From NCBI GenBank assembly GCA_964035545.1, contig OZ037772.1:11592818-11656817 (forward strand): a stretch of 64,000 bases of DNA, written 5' to 3'. The notes under the pieces are model-generated. The model had not been told where the DNA came from. It saw only the letters and a list, made by a program, of their open reading frames with translations, and made no database searches. Each line of letters opens with the position of its first letter. Positions within the stretch are counted from its first letter, which is position 1. Origin of the DNA: Bugula neritina. Taxonomy: Eukaryota > Animalia > Bryozoa. The translations under genes and the position numbers were made by a program. This document shows positions 6,844 through 45,326 of this stretch, piece after piece.

Positions 6844-9800
6844 ATGGGAAGTTATGAGAACATTCTAAAGCTGGATGAGTTGACAGAGAAATACCAGAAA
6901 GAGGCTGAATCAACTGAAAACTGGGTCTCCCATCTCAAGGTAGATCATGTATTCATAAAATAAGCCTCTCAAATAAATGCTAGATAATTTTACCACATCT
7001 GCACAAGCATCATGTCACAGAGATAAGAATGAGAAAGCTAAACAAAATTAAATAAAAACTATCATAGCATGAGGTGAATAAATGCAAAACAAAATTGTGT
7101 TTATGTTACATAAAATAGTTGCTGCAAAAATTACGATTCTGAGCACTCTAAAAATTAAATATAATACTGCTGAATATTTTATACAATATATTCCAAAATT
7201 TATTTTACACACTGGCTACTTATACTAAGCAGATTTTTGCTATAAATATACGCATGCAGCATGTAAATACCAACATCGGTTGGCAGCACTAAAAAAAGTT
7301 ATTGCTCGATGGGATGTTTCAGCAAAAGTTGCTAAAATAGAGAACCTAACTTTGAGTTTTTATGGTTCATTTTGCTTATATTTCCTAATTTGGTTGTTTA
7401 AAAAGCTTTTTTTAAAATTACTATAATGAGGTATAAATGCAATTCAGCAAATATAAAGCATAATAAGTTGGTTCTTGTAATGACTTGTTATTTAGGCCCA
7501 TGGCTTAGCAAACAGATGTCTGGCCAGAGAATTCTCAGAAGTGAGACAGCAAAAAGTCTATGAGATAGAACAGACCTGGTATAAAGGTAGGCACCCTCTT
7601 GCCTATGATGAACATCAAAAATTAACAAATGAACATCTACAACTTCTGAACAACTACAGAAGTGAAACAGAAATAGATTTTGACTCTATTGACACAACCC
7701 ATCTCAAGCTTGACAATGGTCCAACAGAAGATCAACTATCTTTGTTCTGTGACAGTGTGTTTAACCTTAGCCAAAAGTGTAGCAATGGCTTTATTAAGAT
7801 CTGTAAATCTATTATGCAGTCAAGTGTTGACATCCTCAGTAAGTCAGGTTTGGAGGTTCCTTGTTCTTTTGCTGTGGTGGCGTTAGGTTCAGTTGCTCGT
7901 GGTATGGCCACTCCATACTCAGATTTAGAGTATGCTTTTGTTGTTGAGTCGGACAGTTACAATGATTATTTTACTAAGTTAGCAGTTGATAGCTACTTTA
8001 GAATTGGAAACATGAAGGAATCACCGTTGAAAAGTTTTGACATCGCTGAGATAGACAAAAAGAATAGTGACAATGTCCCTGTTGGCTTCCATATCGACGG
8101 CATTTCTGCGAAAGCCGGAAATATTCCTACAGGCAGAGGTGATGGTGCTAAAAACCTGATTCTAACCATAGAACAGTTAACCGATGTGTATAGGAAAGCT
8201 TTGGTTTCACCTGCTGAACTCACAGCAGATATTGGTGATCTACTATCATCACAAGTGTTGGTGTATGCTCATAATGATGGCGCCATTTTGTACAAAACAG
8301 CAATAGAAAATTGTCATGCAGTCTTGAAGGCTGAAGCATCAAACAAAATGATAATAAAAAAGAGATTGCAGATCCTAAAGCAAGATGTGAAGACATATGA
8401 TTTCCTACCAAGTTTTGAGTCCTTTGGGCCTCCAGACAACACAAAGTTGAGAGTCAAATCCGAATTATTTCGTTATCCAACACTTCTAGTTGATCACCTT
8501 CGGCTCCTGTTAGGCCTTCACGATGCCACTCCATGGGCAGTTATTGAGAAACTAAAAAATTCTAACTTCATTGATAAAAAGCAATGTTTCAAACTAAACT
8601 TAGTGACTGCTCTAGCTATATATATAAGAACAACAGCTTGTATACAGTTAGAATCTCAAAATGATGAGTTTTCACTGTATCCACGTGCACGACCCAACAA
8701 AAAAATATACAATTTAGGTCACGAAATTTTTATCTTAATGGTGCATACAGTTGTTCCATTGAAATTGTGCATTGGGCAAAATTTGGTTTCGCTTGCGTGC
8801 CTCACCACGCTCGACTCAAGTGACGTGGTGAAAAGGCTGTTGGCAGATTTAGGTCTGATTCAGCCGTCTTTTATGCTGAAGGCAGAAGCCGAATATTTTT
8901 GTGGTCACTATGAGCAGGCAATAAGTACAATTACAGCTACCTGTGGTACAGACATATTTTGTGAAAAACCAGATGAATTTGTGGATATTGTAGAAAACGC
9001 CATTACTAAAAACCTCGAAAACAGTTCAACATCAACATATAAGAATGATCCTAATGATTTGAACAAAGTAAAATCCTCAAAACAATACATCGAGCTAGCC
9101 GCATACCTGTTGTATTCTACGCACAAATATCATCTTTCTTTAAAATACTTCATTTGGCTTGCAACAGAGTTCAAGGAGACCCCTCTTAGTATGTTGAAAT
9201 GGAAGATTTTGGCTGCAGATTCCGCTAACAAGCTTCATGACTACTATGAAGCGTTTTCTCAACTAGGTGACGTATATTCCACCCTAAAAACAAATTTTGG
9301 GGGCAATGAAGCACTAAGTCCGTACAGATTTGTAAAAAGTATGTGTACGGATTCTAAAATTTTAGGTGAAGATCGGCATTGGTTTGAAGTCACGGCACAA
9401 GCTTTTCGAGTGCTCAGTCAATCGTGCAAGAACACAAAGTACTACATCCAAGCAGAGGAGATGGCCAATACCGCAGTTTTGGTGTCTGACAAACTACATA
9501 AAAGTGACAAAAGAAAACGCCTGGACAGTCATTACATTGAACTGATAGTATCTCTAGCACTTATACATTCAAAGAAAAATGAACATAAGAAAGGCATTCA
9601 GTATTTAAACCACCATTTAGCTCAGCTAAAAGAACTTCACACCGACTGTATCGATCACCCAGACATTGCGTTACTACTGAGAGGGCTGGGACAGATTTAT
9701 GAAATTATGGGTGATTATGAGCAGGCTACGAGTTTCTCTAGCAAAGGGTTATCTATGATAAAAAACTTGCACCCTACTACTGATCATGTGAGTGTTGCTC

Positions 9801-44200: not shown

Positions 44201-45326
44201 GTTTTCATAAGCCTAGGGCCACACTGTGCGTATTTTCGCATGCGAAAATTGAAATCACAAGTAGCAAAGGTGTCCACTGTGCGCGTTGAGAAAACATTCG
44301 CACTTGTCGCTCTGCATTTTCAACGCAAGTGCGAACCGTCTCTGTCGTCGTCACCTAATTGGCTGGTAGTTATTAAGCGAGCCCAATTTCTTTATTTTAG
44401 TGCTAAATTCCAGTAAATTGCGTTTTATTGAAAGCGAGTGCGATTTAAAAATGAAAGCTTTATTTATCACGCATCACTGACGCTACAGTGGACGCCTTTG
44501 CTACTTGTGGTTTCAATTTTCGCATGCGAAAATACGCACCGTGTGGCCCTAGGCTAAATATGAATACATTAGTCAGTTCAGTCGTTTCTACTTGTATCTA
44601 TTTCGTAACTTTTATTGCTTTGATGATAGCCTACACCCTTAAACTCGATGAACTATAGGCAAACATAGAGATACAACGAAATTCTGGAATGTTACAGAGC
44701 TGAAATGTATCTTGCAGATATAAACAAGAGTATAGGACTTTGATATGCTCAGCTGAGAAGCTTTGCTATAACTAGTTAAGCTCTAAGTTAGAGTCATTCA
44801 AAAGTAATTTACATGTTAATATTTGAGGACTACAGAGACCATTGAATGCATTGTAGAACCAACACACTGGATAGAGTTTTTACAGAACATAAGGGCTTAA
44901 AATAATGTAATAAAGTCATAATAATTGCAAAGCTATAACATAGATGGGCAGTTTAGCCATAATTTTCTTGCCATATTTTTCTAATAGTTATGAGAGTATT
45001 TGCAGCATTTGAGGTTGAGTGATTAAAGTTATGTTACTGCAGCTTTAACTTAACAGTTGTTATATATACCTTGTATTTCTAATTCTGAACTTGAAAAAAC
45101 TTTGATGTTGTATTCGATGTTCAGCAACCACAAAATATTAATGGTTTATAAAGTAAAGCTGAAGAATGGTGCAGGGAGACAAAGTCCTTTCTATCTATAG
45201 CAACATTATTTTATGCTAATCACAATACTGTTTACTCACTTTGACGTAATCCCACCAGTTTCCGGTTCCATTTGCCTTTCCATGATACTTCCTGGCCAAA
45301 AATTCCATGAACGGAAAATCCCCCAT
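38204..45326 (-). CDS. NTase-TPR protein 2 (~1692 aa): paralog of the gene at 6844-11698
   Basis: Exons 45326-45240 (MGDFPFMEFLARKYHGKANGTGNWWDYVK|GTGAGT) and 43195-38204 (TTTAG|AHGLANACLAR...). NTase motif FAVLGLGSVPSGVVTPYSDIEYVILV, GYRIDG and AGNIPTG; many 44-aa TPRs (e.g. HPEIAASYSKMG...). Same intron position and phase as paralog 1. Confidence 0.87.
43244..43347. repeat. (GT)n microsatellite in the NTase-TPR 2 intron
   Basis: Long GT run. Confidence 0.95.
44211..44554. mobile_element. MITE with ~70-bp TIRs and TAA TSD (PIF/Harbinger-like)
   Basis: GCCTAGGGCCACACTGTGCGTATTTTCGCATGCGAAAATTGAAA... at the left end and its reverse complement ...TTTCAATTTTCGCATGCGAAAATACGCACCGTGTGGCCCTAGGC at the right, flanked by TAA on both sides. 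Confidence 0.85.

Follow-up and report, generated by a model that had tools for sequence, protein, structure and literature searches.

Genes joining a GlnE/DrrA/DUF294-class nucleotidyltransferase module to TPR arrays in the bryozoan Bugula neritina: a multi-copy family of candidate protein nucleotidylyltransferases

Results

Two intact nucleotidyltransferase-TPR genes

The stretch of Bugula neritina DNA analyzed here comprises 64,000 nucleotides (nt; assembly GCA_964035545.1, contig OZ037772.1, positions 11,592,818 to 11,656,817 of the forward strand) and is referred to throughout as the window, with position 1 as its first letter. It harbors two intact two-exon genes, gene 1 on the forward strand and gene 2 on the reverse strand, which encode proteins of 1432 and 1692 amino acids (aa), respectively, in agreement with the two paralogs of about 1400-1700 aa put forward in a preliminary description made from the sequence alone. 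The two proteins share 31% identity over their full length and follow the same layout: an N-terminal nucleotidyltransferase (NTase) module of some 440 residues, a helical linker and a long solenoid of tetratricopeptide repeats (TPR) of the TPR_12 type. The corresponding open reading frames (ORFs) span 7541-11698 (+) and 38204-43186 (-), and the complete gene models are as follows.

6844..6939, + strand: gene 1 exon 1, 32 codons from ATG to AAG, followed by GTAGAT; its peptide is similar to Watersipora homologues at their N-terminal ends
6940..7495, + strand: gene 1 intron, GT...AG, phase 0, with the acceptor AG at 7494-7495
7496..11698, + strand: gene 1 exon 2, 1400 codons plus stop, starting AHGLAN; the frame is open upstream to the acceptor
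45326-45240, - strand: gene 2 exon 1, 29 codons from ATG to AAA, followed by GTGAGT; it matches the N-terminus of Bugula neritina KAF6023605.1
43196..45239, - strand: gene 2 intron, GT...AG
38204..43195, - strand: gene 2 exon 2, 1663 codons plus stop, starting AHGLAN

The exon joins are supported because in both genes the exon 1 peptides, once joined, align through the exon junction with annotated gene models of Watersipora and Bugula, and because the position of the intron, directly before the motif [AS]HG[LI][AV]N, is kept in 20/20 further paralogs from the Bugula neritina genome. Exon 2 of gene 2 shows 96-97% identity with a cluster of Bugula neritina proteins, KAF6023605.1 among them, and chance can be excluded as the source of these reading frames, given that homologues of the window proteins reach E values of 1e-190. 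Since neither protein presents a signal-peptide-like N-terminus or a long hydrophobic stretch, both are predicted to be probably cytosolic. Of the sequencing runs listed, none is recorded as RNA; one run guessed to be RNA, a "symbiont metagenome", contains 13% of the sampled words but may be DNA, and it is given no weight as evidence of expression.

The limits of the domains within the two proteins are listed below; those of the gene 2 enzyme module are approximate, as they derive from its alignment with gene 1.

7550..8809, + strand: gene 1 adenylyltransferase module of the GlnE/DrrA/DUF294 type, with an NTase core and a helical substrate-binding domain resembling KNTase_C/HEPN (exon 2 residues 19-438, from AlphaFold models)
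8810..9460, + strand: gene 1 linker joining the enzyme to the recognizable TPRs, helical in the model, with no Pfam family and no Walker A motif
9461..11695, + strand: gene 1 TPR_12-type array (Pfam), the last 9 units of 44 aa being repeated at the DNA level
41861..43141, - strand: gene 2 adenylyltransferase module
38207..41194, - strand: gene 2 TPR_12-type array (Pfam; PADLOC TPR model)

Fold and class of the N-terminal module

Two AlphaFold models were obtained for the enzyme region of gene 1. The first, of exon 2 residues 1-535, has a predicted local distance difference test score (pLDDT) of 79.7 and a predicted template modelling score (pTM) of 0.85, while the second, of the core as modelled from a 44-sequence alignment, reaches a pLDDT of 89.0 and a pTM of 0.90, with no segment below 50. 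The first model was compared exhaustively with 48,161 representatives of the PDB by means of VIA-align, and the comparison was repeated with the second. The best structural match is DrrA (6yx5_B), with a Z score of 25.6 (319 of 339 residues aligned) for the first model and 23.7 (291 aligned) for the second, accompanied by the N-domain of GlnE (1v4a; Z 21.8 and 22.4) and by its C-terminal adenylylating domain (3k7d; Z 21.3 and 20.0). In the DrrA and GlnE superpositions, 285-322 residues align at a root mean square deviation of 3.0-4.1, with the NTase core and the helical domain behaving as one unit, whereas unrelated PDB structures in the same comparison do not exceed a Z score of 8.5. The helical domain alone resembles HEPN and KNTase_C domains (Z about 8), and a Foldseek search with the gene 1 model concurs with these assignments (E 2.4e-7). 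Lower in the ranking, the aminoglycoside nucleotidyltransferases ANT(4'), AadA and AAD(9) match across both domains at Z 7-8, HalB at Z 5.8-6.3 and DwCdnB, a member of the cGAS/DncV-like nucleotidyltransferases (CD-NTases), at Z 3.5-3.7; the Foldseek match to CdnC (6p80) has a probability of 0.33 and a template modelling (TM) score of 0.18-0.26. No cGAS or OAS chain is found among the 50 matches listed in each structure search.

Sequence profiles lead to the same neighborhood. When a 14-member profile of the family was compared with the PDB, DrrA was the sole match, placed exactly on the catalytic motif (E 2e-4), and with a broader profile it was again the only significant sequence match (E 3.4e-7), on the motif GS-x-A-x3-AT-x-YSDL-[DE]. 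Sub-threshold hints on gene 1 include SidM_N in Pfam (E 4e-4) and GlnD, MntA and ANT(4') in NCBIfam, the latter collection giving none on gene 2. In the ESM Atlas, the nearest clusters by language-model features are bacterial DUF294/DUF294_C proteins (0.96), which are also recovered by shape with TM scores of 0.66-0.69; the closest cluster by shape, with a TM score of 0.82, is eukaryotic and consists mostly of chordate proteins that join DUF294 to TPR_12. On the strength of these models and profiles, the N-terminal ~440 residues are predicted to be a complete Pol-beta nucleotidyltransferase module of the GlnE/GlnD/DrrA/DUF294 class, and we consider the modelled fold to be settled. Fold (AlphaFold, Foldseek, VIA-align) and profile evidence thus bear out the initial assignment of the module to Pol-beta enzymes of the GlnD/GlnE/DUF294 kind instead of to cGAS or OAS.

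Active-site residues

All the motifs quoted in the preliminary description are present in the two proteins: LGSVARGMATPYSDLEY in gene 1 and LGSVPSGVVTPYSDIEY in gene 2, GFHIDG and GYRIDG, the shared AGNIPTG, and FRYPTLL and FRFITLL in the region that follows. The positions of those that make up the putative active site are given here, with the residues of gene 1 (G131, D143, E145 and D201) in exon 2 numbering.

7886..7933, + strand: gene 1 catalytic motif G131-S132-x9-S142-D143-L144-E145-Y146, aligned to DrrA G-x11-D-x-D and to GlnE G159...D173-x-D175
8084..8134, + strand: gene 1 GFHID201G...AGNIPTG, candidate third carboxylate and following loop, aligning to the GlnE VYRVD223MRLRPFG region
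42740..42787, - strand: gene 2 catalytic motif G137-S138-x9-S148-D149-I150-E151-Y152, from its alignment with gene 1 and paralogs
42536..42586, - strand: gene 2 GYRID208G...AGNIPTG, from the same alignment

The catalytic-motif segments fit the superfamily signature hG[GS]-x9-13-Dh[DE]: that of gene 1 reads ALGS-x9-SDLEY, with the model strands at residues 125-130 and 144-150, and that of gene 2 reads GLGS-x9-SDIEY. The pattern G-S-x9-S-D-h-E was found in 22/22 paralogs read. In an alignment of 44 diverse sequences, which covers bryozoans, Owenia, Branchiostoma, Jidaibacter and metagenomic members, no sequence departs from the Gly, the Ser or the first Asp (44/44), and a single one lacks the Glu and the distal Asp (43/44 for each). 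Conservation of the acidic residues, proposed beforehand for the two window genes, hence extends across paralogs and phyla. The lone exception is P0031, an ENA metagenome protein of 1071 aa in which the Glu is replaced by Gly and the distal Asp is lost, and which may be either a pseudoenzyme or the product of a sequence error.

The distal motif follows the pattern aromatic-[R/H]-I-D-G...A-G-N-I-P-T-G...L-I-x-T-x-E-x-L-x-x-x-Y, which parallels two segments of E. coli GlnE: V-Y-R-V-D223-M-R-L-R-P-F-G...L-V-L-S-F-A-A-L-E-D-Y-Y and L-Y-E-V-D752-A-R-L-R-P-S-G. This correspondence suggests D201 in gene 1 and D208 in gene 2 as candidates for the third carboxylate.

TPR arrays and absence of a switch domain

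Pfam recognizes 10-11 TPR_12 stretches in each window protein. The 44-aa unit, which is also seen in the protein, is repeated at the DNA level in gene 1, where Tandem Repeats Finder detects 9.2 copies with a period of 132 nt at 10464-11680, so that the 44-aa TPR solenoid described beforehand is confirmed. TPR_12 arrays are protein-binding solenoids, usually binding proteins or peptides. PADLOC matched the window proteins only with its generic TPR models and yielded no tie to a known anti-phage system.

No Pfam match to a P-loop NTPase of the NACHT or NB-ARC type is found between the effector and the repeats of the window proteins, and a Walker A motif is lacking in gene 1 and appears in gene 2 only as a chance match inside a helix of the NTase. 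Because they contain no such NTPase switch, the gene 1 and gene 2 proteins, as judged from their domain content, are not of the design of nucleotide-binding leucine-rich repeat (NLR) receptors. Death, TIR and CARD domains are absent, according to Pfam, from the window proteins and from every relative scanned; the large relatives scanned for immune adaptor domains show only repeated NTase-TPR units together with OTU, F-box-like and EGF domains, and neither window protein has a Pfam match to F-box or OTU. The R-x4-6-H motif of HEPN domains is matched once in gene 1, at a non-conserved site, is not found in gene 2 and is absent from the invariant columns of the alignment. A survey of HEPN domains lists the GlnD/GlnE/DUF294_C branch as devoid of this motif, and as bacterial (PMC3710099).

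Copy number, variation and spread of the family

A search of the 216-Mb Bugula neritina genome with the family profile returned at least 70 matches. Some 56 of them are uninterrupted and close to full length, and several others are split or contain stops; these copy counts are lower bounds, and the figure of ~56 was counted by hand from the match table. The two genes are therefore not single-copy housekeeping orthologues. Most copies are clustered in tandem, at 6.35-6.43, 11.78-11.82 and 15.9-16.16 Mb of C5 and at 0.39-1.0 and 2.9-3.15 Mb of C6, with further tandem clusters at C2 32.47-32.55 Mb, C7 13.56-13.59 Mb and C1 28.58-28.60 Mb. The clusters hold pseudogenes beside intact copies, as evidenced by the presence of truncated, stop-bearing or frame-split copies (C6:404326-405885, C5:11775786-11777351, C5:15101530-15102501, C5:16121079-16122646, C5:15115976-15117543 and C2:32553040-32554526).

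Variation among paralogs was analyzed on 22 copies, in which the large exon encodes from 551 to 2267 aa, chiefly as a result of differing TPR number. Ratios of nonsynonymous to synonymous substitution rates (dN/dS; Nei-Gojobori) were calculated for pairs within three paralog groups. Their medians rise from 0.14-0.24 in the NTase module through 0.27-0.44 in the linker to 0.38-0.59 in the TPR array; the pairs are non-independent, and the TPR alignments are approximate where repeat numbers are unequal. By this measure the enzyme module is clearly under purifying selection, and the TPR arrays are, on the same estimates, freer and faster-evolving than the enzyme module, with dN/dS remaining below 1 everywhere. 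Within clusters, the TPR arrays show a lower median dS than the NTase module (0.16 vs 0.21) and a higher dN, a combination compatible with homogenisation of the repeats accompanied by diversification of the amino acids at a few sites in the 44-aa unit.

Beyond the Bugula neritina genome, the family profile matches 2029 cluster representatives with E values below 1e-3, of which 389 lie below 1e-30. The named members belong to Bugula, Watersipora, the annelid Owenia fusiformis, three Branchiostoma taxa, Candidatus Jidaibacter acanthamoeba and a Parachlamydiaceae bacterium. Owenia fusiformis has at least 13 copies, some of them with OTU and one with EGF domains, and several copies are present in Branchiostoma. 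The OTU deubiquitinase-like domain stands before the NTase in Owenia fusiformis P0161, P0204 and P0205, which are listed with P0215, and one member bears EGF-like domains. Three giant proteins of 3100-3200 aa (P0034, P0114 and P0140) contain two NTase modules, each with its own TPR array, and may be genuine multi-module proteins or else the result of gene models having been fused. An F-box-like N-terminus is seen in P0140, encoded on a 126-kb metagenomic contig, and in the Jidaibacter protein. In a 25-row tree, from which one badly cut row (P0023, with a branch length of 10) was disregarded, the bryozoan and Branchiostoma clades are well supported, the former standing apart on a long branch, and the deep nodes lack resolution. 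A search of genome contigs with two peptide patterns from the family recovered no relative. A bacterial origin of the family was considered; with the deep nodes unresolved and the contig search empty, neither a donor nor a direction of transfer can be claimed.

Relationship to known systems

The N-terminal domain of DrrA (SidM) from Legionella pneumophila (6yx5, 3nku) resembles the window proteins in its NTase core, its helical domain and its catalytic motif, but the identity between them is only about 17%, DrrA has D-x-D where the window family has D-x-E, and the loop bearing GNIPTG is longer in the latter. The proteins also diverge beyond this module, since DrrA continues into guanine nucleotide exchange factor (GEF) and phosphatidylinositol 4-phosphate (PI4P)-binding domains and the window proteins into TPRs, and in their nature, DrrA being a secreted bacterial effector and the window genes being animal genes with an intron. 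DrrA AMPylates Tyr77 of Rab1 (PMC8097203), and both the glutamine synthetase adenylyltransferase (GS-ATase) and DrrA AMPylate Tyr by means of a G-x11-[D/E]-x-[D/E] motif (PMC8097203, PMC12409994).

E. coli GlnE (1v4a, 3k7d) runs parallel to the window family in three motifs, namely G-x11-D-x-D, the aromatic-basic-aliphatic-Asp motif of a strand (YRVD/YRID), and the Pro-x-Gly loop followed by L-[VI]-x-[ST]...L-x-x-Y. Identity is nevertheless about 10-14%, the RLRP of GlnE is replaced by GNIPTG, and GlnE possesses two modules where the window proteins have one and lack the central domain regulated by PII or glutamine. For a family of some 56 TPR-fused copies, nitrogen regulation would be an implausible role. 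The bacterial proteins with DUF294 (PF03445) and DUF294_C (PF10335), for their part, present N-terminal sensors of the cyclic nucleoside monophosphate (cNMP)-binding, CBS or Cache type and no TPRs.

The core arrangement of the window proteins recurs in the NEX2 family of Neochlamydia, the best described of the look-alike bacterial families, in which a DUF294 NTase is likewise followed by many TPRs and which is likewise massively expanded. NEX2 comprises 50 proteins with an F-box, sometimes an OTU domain, then DUF294 and then TPRs (Domman et al. 2014, PMC4209131), and its describers read these proteins as host-directed effectors acting on the ubiquitin system (PMC4209131). OTU precedes DUF294 in ten NEX2 members as it does in the Owenia animal proteins, although NEX2 proteins are bacterial and have an N-terminal F-box, which the window proteins lack. 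Giant TPR proteins of Jidaibacter also match the family profile, with E values of about 1e-56 to 1e-61.

The established animal AMPylases, FICD (Fic fold, with TPRs) and SelO (pseudokinase fold), share with the window family the proposed chemistry, protein AMPylation, but their catalytic folds are unrelated to it. FICD also joins TPRs to a catalytic domain (PMC12409994). Both enzymes are single-copy and conserved, in contrast with the multi-copy, lineage-restricted window family. Two recent reviews of AMPylation recognize no animal AMPylases other than FICD and SelO and describe the GS-ATase/DrrA type from bacteria alone (PMC8097203, PMC12409994).

The preliminary description had stated that no functional characterisation of this architecture was known in animals. 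This holds insofar as no paper on the animal family was found in a literature search that most subscription journals lay outside, for which reason the absence is not proof; the mentions of DUF294 found in the literature concern bacteria or name the domain in passing, and none of them assigns it a function. The statement had nonetheless overlooked the domain naming of UniProt and the DUF294-TPR proteins of Neochlamydia. UniProt/InterPro automatically apply the name of the DUF294 entry to members from Bugula and Owenia, so that the domain call itself is not new, and the DUF294-TPR architecture has already been described in Chlamydiae (NEX2, PMC4209131).

Genomic surroundings

Gene 1 and gene 2 are not tandem neighbors. 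An XPA-like exon and LIM-domain exons lie between them, and the surroundings of both genes are ordinary animal DNA. The other features observed in the window are the following.

1-4700: retroelement-like ORFs
152-4690: GC-rich block (0.56-0.59 vs about 0.35 elsewhere) with long ORFs of 884, 285 and 304 aa, probably a retroelement body
17784-18101, + strand: ORF with a C-x2-C...C-x2-C zinc finger, resembling an exon of a DNA-repair gene of the XPA type
22831-25515: 2.7 kb of satellite DNA in which periods of 23, 46, 69 and 437 nt are nested, with a strong AT skew of -0.37
30665-37485, + strand: ORFs with repeated LIM-type zinc-finger patterns (C-x2-C...H-x2-C...C-x2-C), probably a four-and-a-half-LIM-like gene
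43200-43330, - strand: CA/TG-type microsatellite in the gene 2 intron near its 3' end, just upstream of the exon 2 acceptor, translating as H-T repeats

Discussion

Among the functions that can be envisaged for the NTase modules, the most likely, by analogy with the characterised enzymes of this fold and with a probability that we estimate at roughly 0.55, is that of TPR-guided protein nucleotidylyltransferases carrying out AMPylation or UMPylation. The NTase would transfer a nucleoside monophosphate (AMP or UMP) from a nucleoside triphosphate to a protein hydroxyl, as GlnE, GlnD, DrrA and MntA do; GlnD, which is related through the DUF294 and GlnD families of Pfam, uridylylates PII at Tyr51, and MntA acts on a tyrosine of HepT. 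The TPR array would bind either the target itself or a ligand governing access to it. Because the enzyme module is conserved and the number and sequence of the TPRs are variable, the paralogs would differ mainly in what their TPR arrays bind. Protein nucleotidylylation is favored because all the characterised structural neighbors (GlnE, DrrA and MntA) modify protein hydroxyls, whereas the other enzymatic option contemplated at the outset, the synthesis of a nucleotide second messenger, is disfavored by the faint resemblance to CD-NTases (Z 3.5-3.7). The logic of a sensor-coupled enzyme is likewise reasonable, since bacterial DUF294 enzymes are habitually fused to cNMP-binding, CBS and Cache sensors, and it seems reasonable to suppose by the same analogy that the TPR array, standing in the place of the sensor, might gate the enzyme or merely recruit its target.

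Several observations weigh against protein nucleotidylylation by these modules. No demonstrated substrate of any DUF294-family enzyme was found in the literature, and the N-domain of GlnE, of matching fold, removes AMP instead of adding it. The candidate third carboxylate is not firmly placed: the segment of D201 is assigned as coil by DSSP, with a pLDDT of 74-79 in the second model, and hhalign against E. coli GlnE, run with a single sequence, aligns the right regions with a probability of 18% and does not fix the register at the third Asp to better than a few residues. In both genes, Glu takes the place of Asp as the second catalytic residue, a substitution that the accepted motif G-x11-[D/E]-x-[D/E] allows at this position (PMC8097203). 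Finally, the window proteins do not attain the gathering score of Pfam DUF294 (18.0 bits for gene 1 against a cutoff of 21, and no match for gene 2). Remoter relatives from Branchiostoma, Owenia and metagenomes, which the family profile links to the window proteins, do pass the Pfam gathering thresholds (51-80 bits for DUF294 and 32-49 bits for DUF294_C), and for this reason the window proteins are best read, as far as profile scores indicate, as divergent kin of DUF294 and not as formal Pfam members.

The fold might also serve a different chemistry or acceptor, the module acting either as an eraser of protein AMP or UMP, in the manner of the GlnE N-domain, or as a transferase to small molecules or RNA ends, akin to aminoglycoside NTases. 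The deadenylylating N-domain of GlnE does match as well as its adenylylating C-domain (Z 21.8-22.4 vs 20.0-21.3), and ANT(4'), AadA and AAD(9) are matched over both domains; yet DrrA, a writer, is the best match in sequence and in structure, and arrays of the TPR_12 type normally engage proteins or peptides, which makes this explanation quite improbable. Much the same judgment applies to a synthase of nucleotide second messengers or oligonucleotides, in which a ligand of the TPRs would trigger a cyclic or linear product as in cGAS and cGAS-like receptors (cGLRs), OAS, CD-NTases or the Hailong enzyme HalB. Such enzymes have the Pol-beta superfamily and the class of catalytic motif in common with the window proteins, the layout of a sensor plus an NTase is formally similar, and HalB and a CD-NTase do occur among the fold matches, but at scores (Z 5.8-6.3 and 3.5-3.7, with a Foldseek probability of 0.33 for CdnC) that contrast with the Z 20-26 of GlnE and DrrA over the whole module; with cGAS and OAS missing from the 50 matches listed and no receptor-like partner domain fused, we deem it decidedly improbable. 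That the NTase is a catalytically silent scaffold, kept for nucleotide binding or structure in proteins that act through their TPRs alone, must be rated lower still. Inactive members may well exist, as suggested by P0031, which lacks the Glu and the distal Asp, and some genome copies are truncated or broken, but the NTase module has a low dN/dS (0.14-0.24), and its G, S, D, E and D are each retained in 43-44 of the 44 sequences compared, which come from bryozoans, an annelid, amphioxus and bacteria; retention of precisely these residues would be unexpected for a scaffold.

A distinct question is the biological process in which TPR-guided protein nucleotidylyltransferases would take part. Their enzymology could be as proposed and their biology that of ordinary regulation, for instance of trafficking GTPases or metabolism, with a copy number resulting from neutral tandem duplication. 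The lack of immune adaptor domains in any relative scanned, a dN/dS below 1 throughout and the ordinary immediate neighbors (the XPA-like exon and the LIM-domain exons) all speak for this explanation, which we hold to be unlikely but deserving of serious consideration. Running counter to it are the ~56 intact tandem copies, the independent expansions in Owenia and Branchiostoma, the highly variable length and higher rates of the TPR arrays, and the expanded look-alike families of amoeba endosymbionts, read as host-directed effectors; these are the usual marks of a conflict family, but they are circumstantial. The case for an immune or allorecognition function, made up of the copy number, the tandem arrangement, the variability of the repeat arrays, the expansions that arose independently in three phyla and the look-alike families in intracellular bacteria of amoebae, is likewise circumstantial. 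It is tempting to speculate, as a rather doubtful proposal, that bryozoans, an annelid and amphioxus own a third class of animal AMPylases, with the GlnE/DrrA fold, that has expanded as TPR-guided sensor-effectors marking microbial or own proteins during infection, symbiosis or colony allorecognition, and that bacteria living as endosymbionts of amoebae carry mimics or relatives of them as effectors.

Whichever process is involved, dozens of animal genes are now seen to contain the GlnE/DrrA fold with intact catalytic residues and fused to protein-binding repeats. If the enzymes are active, the protein-nucleotidylylating enzymes of animals would gain one class, the large orphan family DUF294 would gain a tractable eukaryotic model, and the look-alike effectors of amoeba endosymbionts would gain a counterpart on the animal side.

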